A stretch of 63,539 nt of DNA, filler included, from Reticulomyxa filosa (lineage: Eukaryota; Protista; Foraminifera): the NCBI GenBank assembly GCA_000512085.1. It is 14 parts of 14 records of this genome, joined end to end, with 100 filler letters (N's around TTAATTAATTAA, not from the genome) between each part and the next. Parts side by side here need not be neighbours in the genome. Positions count along the whole stretch, not along the records: positions 51,257 to 58,932 come from ASPP01003136.1; 13 more parts are not named here. One strand, 5' to 3'. The position numbers and the translations under genes were made by a program. Under the pieces are notes generated by a model. The model saw only the letters and a list, made by a program, of their open reading frames with translations. It was not told the origin of the DNA and did not search any database. Below are positions 51,257-58,932 of the stretch, piece after piece (positions within the stretch are counted from its first letter, which is position 1; each line of letters begins with the position of its first letter).

Positions 51257-52050
51257 TGGTTTCCATGATCGATCCCCAATAATGAATTGTTTCATTGGCA
51301 TTATTGCAATTTGCATTGGTGGAATATTTGTTATTTTAAGTGAATCTGGTTCAACTGCCGGCATTCCAGCATCAGCTCATTGATGCATCCACTGGATAAT
51401 GTCGATAATTTACCAATCCATGAGATATAATTTAAATTAGTCTTTGGTCTTGATTCATTCCAAATCTTGTATGCCAACACAATATTATGACCATTGAATC
51501 ATCTGATACATTTGTGATACAGCTTCACATCTTCGTTGTAATTCAAGGATGAAGTTGTGAAATAACATTGATTGTCATAAGCAGTCTGGTTCATTACACC
51601 AAGAATTCTACACTATCATATGCTGCAGATATATCCAATAACACTGCATAAATCACTGAATTGAATCGAATGACTTGTGGATCGTCTCGATCAATCTTAA
51701 TAACAACTCATCTGTGTTATGTCATGATTGGAATCCTGCTTGTGTTTGATGCAATAATTGTTTGTCATTCAACCACCACATTAATTTCCTTCAACACTTG
51801 ATAACAATCGGTCTACTGACTATGTCTCTGTCAGTCTTAGGAATATGCACAATATTTGCCTTTTTCCATACAATAGGCAAATCCCATTCGGAAATTCCAT
51901 CCAAATAGAAATACCAATGATTCAATCATTGCATTGCCACCATTTGATTGTGGATGTTATCAGGACCTTGAGCTTTGTATTTAAACATTAACCAATTGTT
52001 GTGAAATTAATTACTCTTCGATGTGGATAGTCATTGTTGATTACATTAGC
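51257..52050 (-). mobile_element. Decayed LINE reverse-transcriptase fragment
   Basis: KAQGPDNIHNQM and WKKANIVHIPKTDRD motifs, interrupted by stops and frameshifts. Confidence 0.8.
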
Positions 52051-52696
52051 AATGCCCAATTATATTTTAAATCGTTGTTTTCGGATTGTTGAAGTTTCAT
52101 AAAATATTGATACTCAATCCACTTCTTTCAACAAATCAAAAATAAAAAATAAATTTAAACATTTATCAAAAGTGTTTGAATGTTGAATTTTGATTTTTAC
52201 TTATTTTAGCAAAGTAATTTAATTTTGTTCGCCATTCTTGATTCTTTCTGGATGATGTTAAATTGAGTTTATATATTCATCTCAGTATTGGTTACATTGA
52301 TCAATAGCCATTTATTAAATACATTCTTTTCATGTCAATAAAATATTGTATATTTGACTGAAGTGATTTTATATCACATTATTGAATCATAATCATTTAG
52401 TAAACATATGTCATTCGTCTGTTAATAAATGTTAAAGTTAGGTTATATATACAATACTAAAGATCAGTTGATTAATATTTAATCAAGATATCAAAAGATT
52501 TTTCCAATAATATGTTGTGTAGAATCATATATCGAATGTAAAAGAAAAATATTGTAAATGATGTGGTAATTCTAACTGACAAGGAAAAGAGTTACAAGTA
52601 GCAAATAAAAAGGATGTATTGCTATATATTTAAAATACTGTGCTATAAAATTTTCTGTTCTTTGACTATGCACTCATTATTTGGCACTCATGAATC

Positions 52697-54307
52697 TTAA
52701 CGGTGAGGATCCCATACCCAAAAATTGGCTATTGCCATTCACAAAGACAAACAAAATGAAAGCATTTGCAACTCTTCCGAAAATAAGGAAAAGACATACC
52801 GATCCATTTTTCACCTTCCTTGACAGGTAAAGCAGCATGCAGACTAGAATCGTCGGCATTGCCATCTTCCAACATACTGTAAAACAGAACAGCATTTCCT
52901 TTGCCGGGATGTGCTTTCAAAGGGCCGTCTTTTGCCTTTTTTTATATTGATAACAATGATAACGTGATAACTTGTTTCATTTGCAAATAAAAAAATAAAC
53001 TTTTGGGAAGATTGTTTCTCCACCAGCATTGGGGGAGGCTTGGTTATTTAAATAAAACAATAATGTGATCATTCGTTGCTGTGGATTTCCATCCGCTCCA
53101 AAGTCATGGTGACTAGCAAACAATACACGTGATGACATGTTGAGCTTGTGTTGTTTTTGTTGGTGGAAAGGAAAAACAATAACCTGGTGTATTCTTGGCC
53201 GATCTGATAATTAACCACTTGTAACTGTTCGACATTTTTGGTGGGATACAAGATACTCTCAGAGACGTTCAAAATATCCGCCGCACGACGATACAGTGTT
53301 TCCATGACCGCATGTTCATTTCGATCAATCCAAGTATTTTTGGATGTGCGTGTGTTGCTTACCAAACCGCCATGAGTCCCTGCCAGAGATCGCTTGATCT
53401 TGGGTTTGGCCAAGCTGATGACCAAGTCTGCTTCGACCTCACTCAATACCTTTGTGTGATACACACACTCTCTTTAAACCTTGTCTTTGCAGTTGTAAAT
53501 ACATCCACTCACAAAACACAGAGCAAAGACGTTACATTGTCAATTTGAAAGACTTTGGGATCAGTGGATAGCACTTGCAGGGTTATGGAAAGTGGTTTGT
53601 TGTCACGACATTGTTGAACAGCATTCGCGTCAGTGATGTCGTCGGGGATGCACGTCCAATAATATTCATTCGATGTCACGTGATGAGTCTGACCAACGTG
53701 ATTGGCCGACCACATGTGCAGTATTGGGGGACTTCTTGGATAATGTGCTAACCACTTTTTAGGTTTGGATTTGTTCCCACCCCAAATGCATTGTATCTAA
53801 ACCTAAAAAAAAAAGTGAGGCAAATAAGGGATTAAAAACACAGAAAACTGGTTTCCCGGTTTTTTTCTTGTATTCCTCCACAAATATCTCTTCTTCTAAC
53901 AAGCTTTGGTAATATTTCAAGTCTTTTTCTTTTCGGTTCTTTTTGCCCAATGGAAGGATGTATAAATTTTTGTCTGCCTTAATTTCTATCCTCGCAAATG
54001 CCTTTTTTGTGCTTTTCTTCATTGGCGTAAACACAAACACATGTCCGACATACGAACTTGTTGCTGTTGTTCCTCGTGGATCTATCTTGCCTTGATACAC
54101 TAATTCCTTGGTTTCTGGATTCTCCCAGTAATAATCCACCCATGACGAGCGTCCGTTTTTTATTACTACCGCCACTGGAACTGGTGCAAAGGCGTCTTGT
54201 TGTTCTTCATACGTCTGCGTCTCTCCAGTTGCTGTTACTTCTACAAAATTGATTGACTCAATTCGGACAAACGACACGAACAAATACAACAAAAATAAAA
54301 CGGACAT
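52697..54307 (-). CDS. P4H: Secreted prolyl 4-hydroxylase (2OG-Fe(II) dioxygenase) with an N-terminal VHL-beta-like domain; 6 exons, intact
   Basis: Signal peptide MSVLFLLYLFVSFV; DPKVFQIDNVLS, RTSKNTW, EQLQVVNY, HHDF (HxD), TLLFYLN, GGETIFP, GNAVLFY, SLHAALPVKEGEKW, ANFWVWD. Confidence 0.93.
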
Positions 54308-54604
54308 TCTTTAGCTTTTATTTTATTCTTTTTGGCTTCCCCCTATTTTTGCGTTTTGTGCACACTTTTAACTGTTTTGCGTTTGAAATTTGTCCTCTGC
54401 TTGAATAATGTACTTTTATAATTTTTACATGAACAGGTAAGTCATAATACATTAATAAAAAAGTTAAGAGCAAGGTTGTTGGGGCGACAGAGACCGAAAA
54501 TTGAAACCTTTTTTGGACAAAATAAATCAAAAATCCTTCGAATAGAGTCTTACACGAAAAACAATTTGGAACATTGAAGGAAAAAGAGGTGATTCGGTAC
54601 AAGC

Positions 54605-55608
54605 TCATCGTTTTCTTTCTTTAATCCATTTGTAGTTTTTACGAACAACTTTTCCACTATTGACATCTCTTTTTTTATAAACTAAAAATTGTTCCTTTGG
54701 ATTTTGACGATATCGCTTCAGGTTTAAAGCGCGCAGGTTTTTTTTCAAAGTGTCCACTTTTTTGATTCTTAGTTGTGCCTTCCAATAATTTAGCATTGAT
54801 TGTTTTTTTAAATTTTTAATACTTTGCATATTGTTTTGTGTCAATCGATTCATTTCAGAAAGCTGTTTTAATGTTAATCGATTCGACGTATGATGGACAA
54901 GGTCTTTACTTGTGTTGAAATATTTTGCGGGATCAAAGTTACGTCTTTCTGCTTCTGTCGACACAAAGATTTTGTGACCGTTGCTTGCCTTTCCCCCCAA
55001 AAATATATCACACATGCAGTCATGGCACACGCAATATTGGATTGCCTCTCATCTCTTAGACTACAGTCCAAAAAATGAGCAAACAGATACGCGTGAGTTA
55101 TTTGTTATTATTTGGGGTTATTTCAAAACTTGTGAATTATTGGCTGTCGCATTGCTATGTGTACTATCTATGCAATGTAGCGTCTGCAATTGCTTTCGAA
55201 GCTTGGATTGTTGCATTTGTAATTTCATTGAGAGGAAGCGGCTGTTTGCATTGTCGATGGCAATATTTTTTTTTTTGGGAAGTTTGTCAAGTGGTTTGAT
55301 CGTTAATCGACCCTCTTTGGAATTGGTATGCACCATGTCCGAGTGAAATTCGTCTGGATTTTTCATTGATGCGATTAACCGCAAACGATCCAAACGCTCT
55401 TGTTTTTCATGATATTGCTTTGCTCGTTTTATGCTTTGTTTGTTTTATTTCTTTGTTTAATTAGTTTTCTTTTGTCTAGGACAGATACAATTTCTAACTA
55501 GTCTTTGTGGTGCTCCAAAAAACCCAAATGAGCACGAGTCTTTGGTTGGGCTCGCTCCCATCGATATCCTTTACGACCTAGTTTGTTCCAACTTTTACCA
55601 ATACTCAT
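54605..55608 (-). CDS. UTP11: U3 snoRNP / SSU processome protein Utp11; 3 exons
   Basis: ERAQPKTRAHLGFLEHHKDYIKRAKQYH...KNPDEF and C-terminal YKWIKERKR. Confidence 0.9.
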
Positions 55609-57299
55609 GTTAATATCAATTATAATCAAATATGCAATATTGAAAAGCCAACACAAGGGTCACTTTTTGACCAGTGGAAGGCAACTCAATTTTTTGTTAG
55701 CACAATAGAAAGATCAACATCATATTTGAAAATGTTTACGTATTTAATTTTGCGTTTTTTTTATCTATTATTGACAGACAAAGTTTTTTTTTTATTTATT
55801 TTTTATCGTTTTTCGCTTTGATATTTAATTGAATAATATTCAAAACGCAACAAAAATATTAAATTTTTTAGCCAAGGATTTTTTGAGTTTTTGTGCATCA
55901 TTCTACGCTAAAATGCAAAGCTTTAATAAATAAAACAATAATAAGATTGAACTTATGACCAAAAACCATAACAACAAAATTAAAAAAGTTAATTTTTTGA
56001 AGTTGATTTTTTGAAATAGCACATAAACTTTATATCACAAAGATCATAAATAAGTAAAAAGAAATACTCAAAACAGCACTAACACAAGGTTCAATTTTCA
56101 AAAACAATCGCTTTTTTAGAAATGATAGGACATCGCCCCAACGGGGCATAGCCCAACCATAAAAACGCAAAAATTATGAAAAAGTTGTCGTAACTAACAA
56201 AATGTTACACTAAATCCAACACTTTCCTTTCCTCTTTAAATTTAACAGAACTAATGCTTATAAAAAATTTTGCTAATTCTAAACTATGATTGCGACGGTG
56301 AATTTGTTCCAACCGATCACAATTATAGCTTGAGTGGCAGTCACGTGATATTTGTCTCAACGAGCGCTCTCGAAACTATTCAAAAAATTTAATAAATAAG
56401 AAAATTTCTTAATATCACTTGGTGAAACTATAGTCTTTGTTTATTTATGTTCTTTGTTCGGATCTGTGTTCCATTTGAATCTTTACTTTCTGACTTGTCA
56501 GCTGTTGGAAAGTCACTAGGAAAATTCACTAAAAAACCGAACGTTTTAATAATCTGGTACTTGTCAATATTCTGTTGTATTTCTCAAGCAACTAGCTTTT
56601 AAAGCTTTGCCTGAGAAAAGACATGAAAGTAATTTTTTTCAAAAACCGTCACAAGCCTAAATATAATAAAGTTATCTCGGTAAACTATTCCCAACAACGA
56701 ATAAACAAGACAAATTCCAAGAATAAAAGGACTACTAAAAATCCAAAAATAAAAAAATAAAAAACAAAAAAATTGCAAAAATTAATAAAGTAAAAAAAAA
56801 CTATCGATTTAACCATTGTGAAAATTGTGTGAATGAATATATTGTTCCAGCAAGATATATACGCGTTATATCTTGTTATAAAATTATTTTTACTGTTGAG
56901 TATCTGGATATATTCCTAAAGGAATAGCATCGACATTGGAACATAGTCAGAACAATAGTAGAATAGCGATGTATATATATTCTTGTAGAGTTTATGTAAC
57001 ATTATTGTTGTTGCCACATTACTGAAAAATATAATTTGTGAGACAACATACAATTTATGTTGTCAGTTTATGCAACAAAATTGATTAATAGAAAAAAAAA
57101 ATCACCAGAAAATGATAAGTATAGTCATCAATAATCAAACCACCAGCCAAGAAACAAACGACAAAAAATTGAAGTGAAAGTACATAATTGTAAAAATTCA
57201 TGAAAAAAAATTAATGAAGAAAATGAAATAAAAAATAAAACACAAGAACAAAAAAAGAATGAAGAAGTGAATGAAGAAAATGTTTGAAAAAATAGCAGA

Positions 57300-58690
57300 A
57301 AAATTATACTACAATTTTTCTGCAAAAATTTTCCAACATTAGTCATTAATCCTGTCAAATGACGAATGCTATTATCTGCATCGCCATTAATTTGATTTAT
57401 GGGACTTTATTCAAAATATATACGGCCAATGACCAAAGCTTATACATACTAGTCAAGTCGAAGAACACAAAGTATTCACATTCGGAGTTATAAAATATTG
57501 CAAAAAGATTTAATGATATTCACAACAAGCAATCAGATCAAAACAATGTCAAAGGCATAATAAAATACAATTTGTGATTCTAAAGTGCAGTATTTTTCAA
57601 AAATCGTATGCAAAAGATAATATATTAGAATAACTTAGTAGTCTATATTTGAATCGTTATGATTACTAAAAAATATCAATTTACGTGAATCAGAAAAAGA
57701 AACTCTGGACACACTTGCAGAATAAAATTGTAAAGATCAATAAATTTATCCATTCAAGGATTTACCAATTGTAATGATATTGATTTTATCAGCATAAGAT
57801 ATTAAGAGCATTTCAAATGACAATATCTTTATTGGTTATCAACAAATGAAGTGCGAGCTATTGATCAATATAGTCTTCTCACAATAAAGTCATTCAAACA
57901 ATGTCAGAAATACTATTATTTGAATCATATTGCAAATGAATGAAATAGAAAACAAGTCTGCAAGTATTGTGGCAGAATAAATCAAATCAACCAAGACATA
58001 AAGAAAATCCGCAGATATAATAATAATGACAAAACTAAAGAAACTGGGACATGTGCAAGATCGGGAAAAGCCATAATTGGACAAAAAATGATTTGGAAAG
58101 GATCATTTTATGACAAAATAAATGTTTTGTCAATTTTGATCATTAAACTCAAACAAAATCTCAATAATTCCATCTTTGTTGAACCCAGTAAAGATGGAAA
58201 TACATTCCATATTGCTGAAAATGATATTGACAAAGCAAATTTACTTGCAAATTGGTTTTCTCAACCACTACAGCATCCAAAACCATCAAATGAAGATGAA
58301 GGACATTATCAATATGTCAAAGATTGAATATGTTCAGCTGTGCATATCTCAAAAGAGTTTGAATTGTATGAACATCAATCACAATTTAAATATTATCAAT
58401 CAGAAATTACATAAGAATGAGTTATGGAAGCAATCAGACATGTATCTGCAATGTCCTGATAATATTCATAATTTAATGCTGAAAAATGTTGGACAAAGTT
58501 TGATTGATTCACTTATGATGCCTTTTGGATGGAGTTACAGAATCAGCTATTTTTCCAAAGCATGTAAAAGGCACATATTGTTTCGATTCCCAAATCATAT
58601 AGTGACCCAAGTATTTGTAAAAATTACAAGTCAATATTGCTGCTTTCATGTGTTGGGAATTGATAGAACGCATTGTGACAATGGTGTTAA
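57300..58690 (+). mobile_element. Decayed LINE ORF2 fragment, same family as 51257-52050
   Basis: KANLLANWFS, PDNIHNLMLKN and NYxxxxLLSCVG remnants with many stops. It is truncated next to the DNA-transposon end at 58722. The 5' boundary is approximate. Confidence 0.75.
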
Positions 58691-58721
58691 TAAAGTAAAA
58701 TGACAATATTATAGAAAATAA

Positions 58722-58932
58722 TACAGTAAATTGCAAAAAAAACTGACATACCTAAATGGCACTATATGAATAGAATCGATTTTCTCCATGAAAAATAAAG
58801 ATTTAAAACTAATTTTTTTAAAAAAAAATATCTACTAATCTTGTAGTTTTTAAATATGAAATTGGTTTTATGATAAGTTTTTTCTAGTTTGATCAAAAAT
58901 ATGATTTTTTCAAGTGATTTTTAAAAATTTCG
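58722..58932 (+). mobile_element. Third, more diverged copy of the Tc1/mariner-like terminus
   Basis: TA-CAGTAAATTGCAAAAAAAACTGAC...; its reverse complement aligns with 20997-21208 (e.g. AAAACTACAAGATT.GTAGATATTTTTT). Confidence 0.75.

Follow-up and report, generated by a model that had tools for sequence, protein, structure and literature searches.

The window analyzed here (the whole stretch of DNA studied, 63,539 nucleotides in length, filler included) is composed of pieces of the genome of the foraminifer Reticulomyxa filosa, one of which, a 7,676-bp contig located at positions 51257–58932, harbors the gene RFI_03313. The gene lies on the minus strand between positions 54307 and 52697 and consists of six exons (Table 1). 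Exon 1 encodes a hydrophobic leader, a VHL-beta-like sandwich, and a long helix, and the prolyl 4-hydroxylase (P4H) domain, intact and with the motifs HHDF, LHAALPV, and GEKWIANFW, spans exons 2–6. In the public annotation, the product (P0001, 462 aa) is named only "hypothetical protein / Fe2OG dioxygenase domain-containing," and RFI_15211 (P0044) represents its paralogue in R. filosa. From the predicted fold, the sequence links, and the profile comparisons described below, it is almost certain that the RFI_03313 product joins a homologue of the beta domain of pVHL to a P4H that looks active.

The exon borders were found to coincide with the ends of the tblastn alignments of complete, transcript-derived foraminiferal homologues onto the contig, and all the introns were of the GT..AG type with lengths of 52–94 nt. 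The end of exon 1 (53849) and the start of exon 2 (53754) together restored the family motif of the homologues, i.e., RTGxP followed directly by WLAHYPR. Transcript-derived homologues support the join between the two exons, and those behind the splice joins originate from Bolivina argentea, Nonionella stella, Pinguiococcus pyrenoidosus, and MMETSP samples. Exon 3 showed 88% identity to the R. filosa paralogue and 46–68% identity to the foraminiferal homologues in tblastn. The exons were queried individually, and P0001 together with complete homologues stood in for the whole protein. The public model places the intron 1 acceptor upstream, after 53797, and so gains 14 residues that none of the homologues has. 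It also retains portions of introns 2 and 3 (53450–53535 and 53113–53183) and, in the region 52697–52799, runs into intron 5 without using the last exon, exon 6 (ANFWVWDPHR). The public gene model of RFI_03313 is corrected by the six-exon structure. The public model of the paralogue P0044 was also observed to be without the WLAHYPR...GQ segment and reads RTGRP-THHV, which is probably an annotation error and not a real deletion.

Table 1. Features of RFI_03313, with positions in the window.
Feature	Position	Strand	Description and evidence
Start codon and hydrophobic N-terminus (aa 1–18)	54254..54307	-	Probable cleavable signal peptide, from translation
Exon 1	53849..54307	-	153 codons; probable signal peptide, ~85-aa beta sandwich, and long helix; homologue tblastn stops at ...TGKP
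VHL-beta-like seven-stranded beta sandwich (aa 41–122; N51, W61, Y71/Q72, S85, Y86, H89, F91)	53942..54187	-	AF2, Foldseek, VIA, profile
Long alpha helix after the sandwich (aa 127–150, YYQSLLEEE...YKKKTG)	53858..53929	-	DSSP on AF2 model, H89–112; conserved in fusion family
Intron 1	53755..53848	-	94 nt, GT..AG; tblastn alignments resume exactly at 53754
Exon 2	53536..53754	-	73 codons; linker WLAHYPRSPPILHMW...YWTC...C, then start of P4H N-terminal strand (VLSTDPKVFQIDN)
Exon 3	53184..53449	-	N-terminal half of P4H catalytic domain; tblastn and PDB P4H alignments
Exon 4	53001..53112	-	HHDF (His-x-Asp iron ligands) and GGET motif; PF13640 24.3 bits, exon alone
Exon 5	52800..52935	-	Distal His (LHAALPV) and 2-oxoglutarate-binding Lys (GEKW); PF13640 15.7 bits, exon alone
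Exon 6	52697..52728	-	(A)NFWVWDPHR, then TAA stop; tblastn of P0010 and P0040 spans 52700–52732

The catalytic part was compared with Pfam and PDB sequences. P0001 matched PF13640 (2OG-Fe(II) oxygenase, P4Hc) with 43 bits (cut-off 27), and the iron ligands His-x-Asp...His as well as the 2-oxoglutarate Lys of RFI_03313 were matched in the alignments by their counterparts in 3ITQ and the homologues. The sole PDB sequence matches of the catalytic part were prolyl 4-hydroxylases, namely, 3ITQ and 5HV0 of Bacillus anthracis (E 7e-17), 2JIG and 3GZE of Chlamydomonas (1.4e-15), human collagen P4H (C-P4H) alpha-2 7ZSC (6e-12), PBCV-1 5C5T, and P4H-TM 6TP5, and no EGLN/PHD-type protein was present among them. 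Judged by these sequence matches, the catalytic domain is of the collagen/algal P4H type and not of the EGLN/PHD type. A preliminary description of the locus, made from the sequence alone, had quoted the protein that follows the signal peptide and had reported the downstream catalytic domain to be intact (HxD...H...K); exon 1 was found to translate to the quoted sequence, and the alignment of HHDF, LHAALPV, and GEKW with the homologues and 3ITQ agreed with the latter.

The product of exon 1 starts with MSVLFLLYLFVSF... and reads further on ...PVAVVIKNGRSSWVDYYWENPETKELVYQGKIDPRGTTATSSYVGHVFVF..., with a mean Kyte-Doolittle hydropathy of 2.28 over aa 3–15. The homologues likewise begin with hydrophobic leaders. 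A cleavable signal peptide with a putative cleavage site is thus probable on the RFI_03313 product. The helix that succeeds the sandwich showed the pattern Y..(L)..E..F...Y..RTG, conserved in the fusion family (alignment A2). The linker encoded by exon 2 is a conserved stretch of ~55 aa (PWLAHYPRxPPxxxMW...GQxHxxxS...YWxCxP...C) that connects the VHL-like domain to the P4H core and for which no Pfam family match was obtained. The linker motif along with the Cys pair was conserved in P0003, P0009, P0010, P0014, P0015, and P0088, and the Cys pair is consistent with a disulfide formed in the lumen. The linker "LAHY" was also considered as a mimic of the HIF "LAPY," i.e., a pseudo-ligand, and this was rejected because these linker positions vary among the homologues.

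To describe the fold of the N-terminal domain (N-domain), aa 39–153 were modeled with AlphaFold2 (AF2) from a family alignment of 25 sequences. The model showed seven strands and one long helix, with a predicted local distance difference test score of 93.6 and a predicted template modeling score of 0.84. Comparison of the model with the PDB by Foldseek returned only pVHL among the top 50 matches (E from 7e-5, ~1e-4). VIA-align superposed residues 3–84 of the model (aa 41–122) on pVHL 68–155, which covers the whole beta domain, with a Z of 10.8 and a root-mean-square deviation (rmsd) of 1.8 Å over 79 residues. In an exhaustive structure search of 48,161 representative chains, Z≥8 was reached only by two pVHL representatives (10.4 and 10.2), and the best non-pVHL fold had a Z of 7.9 with poorer rmsd and identity. 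Sequence links pointed in the same direction. Clusters bearing PF01847 were among the nearest protein-language-model neighbors of the exon 1 product, and an exhaustive phmmer search identified 36 relatives, seven of which matched Pfam VHL (PF01847) at the residues aligned to the query. The scores were 62.1 bits for P0030, 26.8 for P0020, 26.1 for P0090, and 24.1–24.4 for P0016/P0088 (cut-off 21), and the fusion-family member P0014 was slightly under the cut-off (E 1.3e-3, 19.1 bits). With profile A3, made of the fusion family and the Pfam-positive relatives, the top 24 PDB sequences were all pVHL (E 0.0065–0.027), and the first unrelated protein appeared at E 0.14. The resemblance of the predicted N-domain to pVHL exceeds chance, since only pVHL was found at Z≥8 and seven of the 36 phmmer relatives match Pfam VHL. 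By predicted fold, transitive sequence links, and profile, the N-domain is hence a homologue of the VHL beta domain.

Several results weigh against this assignment. Exon 1 matched no Pfam family at E≤1, hence there was no direct match to PF01847, and phmmer with exon 1 gave no match in the PDB. The narrow fusion-family profile A2 did not reach pVHL in the PDB, and pVHL turned up in the PDB profile search only once the Pfam-positive relatives had joined (A3). Furthermore, the multiple sequence alignments of both AF2 models, that of the R. filosa N-domain and that of the P0092 domain described below, held VHL-like relatives. The public full-length model P0001 matched only PF13640 in Pfam and not PF01847. 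The word-index protein search with exon 1 gave no match, because the full-length relatives lie beyond the length window of the search. An Sm-protein match of profile A2 in the PDB (E 0.35) was dismissed as chance. The preliminary description had proposed a VHL-beta-like domain fused to a P4H, and this was upheld by the pVHL-only structural match at Z≥8, the A3 profile match, and the recurrence of the fusion across lineages. The predicted structure superposed on the pVHL beta domain. Of the comparisons it had suggested, the match to the VHL family was obtained in part: the direct Pfam scan was blank, and the link came through relatives that match PF01847 and through A3.

Ser111 and His115 of pVHL bond the 4-hydroxyl of hydroxyproline. 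The HMMER alignment placed N51, W61, P77, S85, Y86, G88, H89, F91, and F93 of the R. filosa domain opposite N78, W88, P103, S111, Y112, G114, H115, W117, and F119 of pVHL, respectively, and the Ser and His that match the readers of the 4-hydroxyl are thus kept as S85 and H89. The pVHL residue numbers are the established ones and agree with the spacing in the printed PDB chain. Of the five pocket equivalences proposed by eye in the preliminary description, those of W88, S111, H115, and W117 (the last as Phe) were reproduced and that of Y98 was not. Conservation was counted over 64 non-redundant instances of VHL-like domains. His was present in 61/64 at the H89 column, and the F91 column (W117 position) was aromatic in all 64 (F 58, W 4, Y 2). 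The W61 column (W88 position) was aromatic in 63/64 (W 56, Y 6, F 1), and the S85 column (S111 position) held Ser in 33 and Thr in 23 (56/64). Tyr/Phe accounted for 58/64 at Y86, and Gly for 53/64 at G88. Tyr/Phe was found in 44/64 at Y71, and the Q72 column was variable and mostly polar. From these counts, therefore, the residues aligned with the pVHL pocket (Trp, Ser-Tyr, Gly-His, and the aromatic residue) show the highest conservation in the 64-domain set, and N51, opposite N78, likewise ranks among the best-conserved positions of the family.

Other observations stand against the reading of these columns as a hydroxyproline pocket. In the HMMER alignment, Y98 of pVHL faces Q72 and not Y71, as the indel of one residue is set in the loop that follows the Trp; the equivalence of Y71 with Y98 would need a one-residue indel in the next turn, the indel fits either neighboring loop, and identity counts and strand periodicity disagree on the choice between Y71 and Q72. 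W117 is replaced by Phe (F91) in the R. filosa domain, and the Ser of the S111 position is Ala in 5/64 relatives. The conserved residues could also serve the stability of the fold instead of binding. The Phe at W117 and the possibly missing Tyr98 equivalent speak against a strict reader, and the evidence from sequence and from fold fits the binding of either hydroxyproline or proline.

The fusion, for which a survey across Rhizaria and stramenopiles had been suggested earlier, was found in foraminifera, diatoms, and Pinguiococcus and hence recurs in several SAR lineages. The N-terminal fusion has the order signal, one or two VHL-like domains, helix, linker with the conserved Cys pair, and P4H. 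Its hosts among the foraminifera are R. filosa (two paralogues), Bolivina argentea (several), and Nonionella stella, and beyond them the diatoms Cyclotella atomus and Cylindrotheca closterium and Pinguiococcus pyrenoidosus, along with many metagenomic and transcriptomic proteins; this taxonomic range is drawn from a few named sequences. The Pinguiococcus protein P0088, a single transcript-derived protein, matched both PF01847 (24.1 bits, cut-off 21) and PF13640 (64.6 bits). A shape search of the ESM Atlas showed a diatom cluster of 81 members, named "procollagen-proline dioxygenase," with the same N-domain and helix (template modeling score 0.78). The reverse order was found in the eukaryotic P4H P0092/P0064 (L001:812-2368), in which a VHL-beta-like domain is C-terminal and comes after a Pro-rich PMPPPP linker; the adjoining genes code for G-alpha, Arf, and a metallophosphatase. 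The model of this C-terminal domain superposed on pVHL 68–155 with a Z of 10.4 and an rmsd of 2.3 Å, its alignment consisting mostly of sequences of other VHL-like families, and phmmer gave no match of the domain in the PDB. A word search for further reverse-order proteins returned only the cluster of P0092 itself. P0092 was also observed to carry an N-terminal domain of ~140 aa without an assigned family. From the N-terminal and C-terminal fusions, it follows that P4H and VHL-beta domains pair in two arrangements.

The fold or PF01847 was also encountered in other contexts. In bacteria (Planctomycetota and Verrucomicrobiota; ESM Atlas clusters), it is fused to DPP-IV/S9 post-proline (prolyl-oligopeptidase) peptidases, and further bacterial partners are leucine-rich repeat (LRR) proteins and SASA 9-O-acetylesterase. 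P0030 has three VHL domains and a type-IX-secretion C-terminal sorting domain (Por_Secre_tail). Eukaryotic partners are PUB in diatoms and ShK in haptophytes. Tandem arrays of two to three VHL-like domains without P4H were observed in the eukaryotic proteins P0019, P0020/P0090, P0013, P0027, P0033, and P0036, some of which are transcript-derived, and in P0019, the His is replaced by N or D in the later VHL-like copies.

The overall best explanation, held with moderate confidence, is that RFI_03313 encodes a secretory P4H in which the VHL-beta domain acts as a (hydroxy)proline-peptide-binding tether to substrates. The enzyme would function in the secretory pathway (ER/Golgi-lumen type; ER, endoplasmic reticulum), where the VHL-beta domain may bind Pro-rich peptides, probably those already 4-hydroxylated. 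Such binding would keep the catalytic domain attached to repetitive, Pro-rich substrates of the secretory pathway, leading to the hydroxylation of neighboring prolines, a tether role that would be analogous to that of the peptide-substrate-binding (PSB) domain of collagen P4H alpha subunits. Processive hydroxylation or product feedback, as put forward in the preliminary description, may be a consequence of the pairing. No ubiquitin-ligase function would be expected, because the protein lacks both an alpha domain and a BC box and is predicted to be lumenal. Binding of proline or hydroxyproline peptides by the N-domain is somewhat more probable than its absence, and a role as a hydroxyproline-specific reader is doubtful. 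Analogy may lend support to peptide binding, as the bacterial VHL domains occur with proline-specific peptidases and pVHL, according to PMC3579754 (citing Grosfeld 2007 and Kurban 2008), binds not only HIF but also hydroxylated collagen IV.

It is conceivable, if unlikely, that the VHL-like domain performs substrate docking, i.e., recruits an unmodified proline-rich (polyproline-II) substrate with no preference for hydroxyproline. Collagen P4H uses a substrate-binding domain of just this kind for unmodified Pro-rich peptide, the bacterial VHL domains are attached to DPP-IV/S9 peptidases, for which ordinary X-Pro is the substrate, and the Phe at the W117 position and the possibly missing Tyr98 equivalent would suit such a role; the retention of the hydroxyl-reading Ser111/His115 positions (His 61/64, Ser/Thr 56/64) speaks against it. 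A purely structural role in oligomerization, folding, ER retention, or packing on the catalytic domain, with no external peptide bound, appears improbable. A common fold does not establish a common function, the helix and the linker motif are co-conserved with the domain, and the pocket residues are partly core residues in pVHL because hydroxyproline enters a gap in its hydrophobic core. However, the same columns are kept in tandem arrays, in the C-terminal position, and in the bacterial peptidase, LRR, and esterase fusions, and a P4H-specific interface cannot account for conservation that is shared by such unrelated architectures.

An intramolecular latch, in which the pocket would bind the protein's own linker PWLAHYPRxPPxxxMW at the start of exon 2 and the linker would be autoinhibitory or self-hydroxylated, is very improbable. 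The linker motif does follow the domain in every N-terminal fusion, is absent from the non-P4H members, and has conserved prolines, but the idea is purely sequence-based, the residues near the first Pro vary (LAHY, LSSF, LSYY, RHHY), and P0092 is without the motif. Lastly, exon 1 could be a separate small gene, unspliced to the P4H exons, and the visibly faulty public model, along with a look-up of RNA runs for this sequence that returned none, would leave room for such an artefact; the exact restoration of the family motif across intron 1 and the same contiguous architecture in the transcript-derived proteins of Bolivina, Nonionella, Pinguiococcus, and MMETSP make its probability negligible.

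The secretory P4H with a peptide-binding VHL-beta tether, as favored here, would unite the production and the putative binding of hydroxyproline in a single protein, in a setting remote from the oxygen sensing of animals. VHL is usually regarded as an animal invention bound to HIF. The findings suggest the hypothesis that the ancestral function of the VHL fold was recognition of (hydroxy)proline peptides, offer a candidate natural, small, and secreted hydroxyproline-binding module, and indicate a possible route to multi-site hydroxylation in organisms without a collagen-type substrate-binding domain. A wider proposal, which at present seems rather unlikely, is that VHL-beta is an ancient general reader of hydroxyproline peptides that was fused at least twice (N- and C-terminally) to secretory P4Hs in foraminifera, diatoms, and other stramenopiles, giving single-chain processive writer-readers on Pro-rich wall/matrix proteins. 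If true, the PHD-VHL partnership of animals would have arisen late, when an older functional pairing was put to new use in the cytosol.

With regard to the neighborhood of the gene, the region upstream of RFI_03313 (window 54605–55656, minus strand) holds a homologue of UTP11 (U3 small nucleolar ribonucleoprotein, snoRNP, protein 11) with at least three exons, the open reading frames (ORFs) 55498–55656, 55118–55393, and 54605–55030 matching positions 5–24, 40–123, and 124–242 of Pfam Utp11, respectively. The flanks 51257–52600 and 55700–58932 are AT-rich, and no Pfam match was obtained for the ORFs scanned in them, two in 58088–58703 (plus strand) and one at 51791–51925 (minus strand).

Comparison with known systems showed that the R. 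filosa domain shares with the pVHL beta domain (PF01847; PDB 1VCB, 1LM8, 4AJY) the seven-stranded sandwich, the signature N..W...SYxGHx(W/F)xF, and the hydroxyl-reading Ser and His. The two are only 18% identical, and the R. filosa domain remains under the Pfam threshold. Unlike pVHL, the R. filosa protein contains no alpha domain or BC box, so it has no link to Elongin C/Cul2; the sandwich is followed by one helix only, the structural alignments end at pVHL 155–162, and no other Pfam family was matched. It further differs in the signal peptide and the predicted lumenal location, in the Phe in place of W117, and possibly in the equivalent of Tyr98 (Y71 or Q72). Whereas pVHL works in trans, the VHL-like domain of R. 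filosa is fused in cis to the hydroxylase. By homology, the N-domain is a member of the VHL-beta superfamily and not a pVHL orthologue, because the alpha domain and BC box are missing and a signal peptide is present.

In common with the collagen P4H alpha subunit, RFI_03313 has a secretory-pathway P4H catalytic domain (7ZSC, 6e-12) after a separate N-terminal domain, which in R. filosa would bind Pro-rich peptide and so aid hydroxylation at multiple sites. The PSB domain of collagen P4H is all-helical and tetratricopeptide repeat (TPR)-like, whereas the R. filosa N-domain is a beta sandwich with one helix; the analogy is functional only, and the R. filosa protein gave no sign of a protein disulfide isomerase (PDI) beta subunit or of an alpha2beta2 assembly. 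The closest catalytic domains are those of the monomeric P4Hs (Chlamydomonas Cr-P4H-1 2JIG/3GZE, Bacillus anthracis 3ITQ/5HV0, and PBCV-1 5C5T; E 7e-17 to 2e-10), which have the same His-x-Asp...His...Lys set and N-terminal secretory signal. Some of the monomeric enzymes possess an accessory domain, but none of the algal, plant, and bacterial P4Hs named here has a VHL-like domain. The plant type 2 P4H, for example, carries a C-terminal Cys-rich ShK/Tox1 module, to which a role in Golgi localization is ascribed in PMC11275109.

The animal HIF-PHD-VHL module likewise pairs a prolyl 4-hydroxylase with a VHL-beta-type domain. In R. filosa, however, the catalytic domain is not EGLN/PHD, neither HIF nor an E3 ligase is involved, and the compartment is another one. 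Accordingly, the VHL/PHD-like pairing outside animal HIF signaling that had been put forward in the preliminary description holds insofar as a VHL-beta homologue occurs with a P4H in protists; it is not a VHL/PHD pair of the E3-ligase type, because the alpha domain and BC box are absent, a signal peptide is present, and the P4H is of the collagen/algal type. According to PMC9618697 (citing Loenarz 2011), neither choanoflagellates nor other protists have been found to possess the HIF/PHD/VHL pathway. Full-text literature searches yielded no account of a fusion between VHL and P4H. The co-occurrence of VHL and P4H is implicit in databases, because P0088 would carry both Pfam domains, yet it is apparently unremarked. 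In contrast to the animal module, the writer and the putative reader of R. filosa are one polypeptide. The fusion joins known kinds in a novel domain architecture and sets the VHL fold in a new context.

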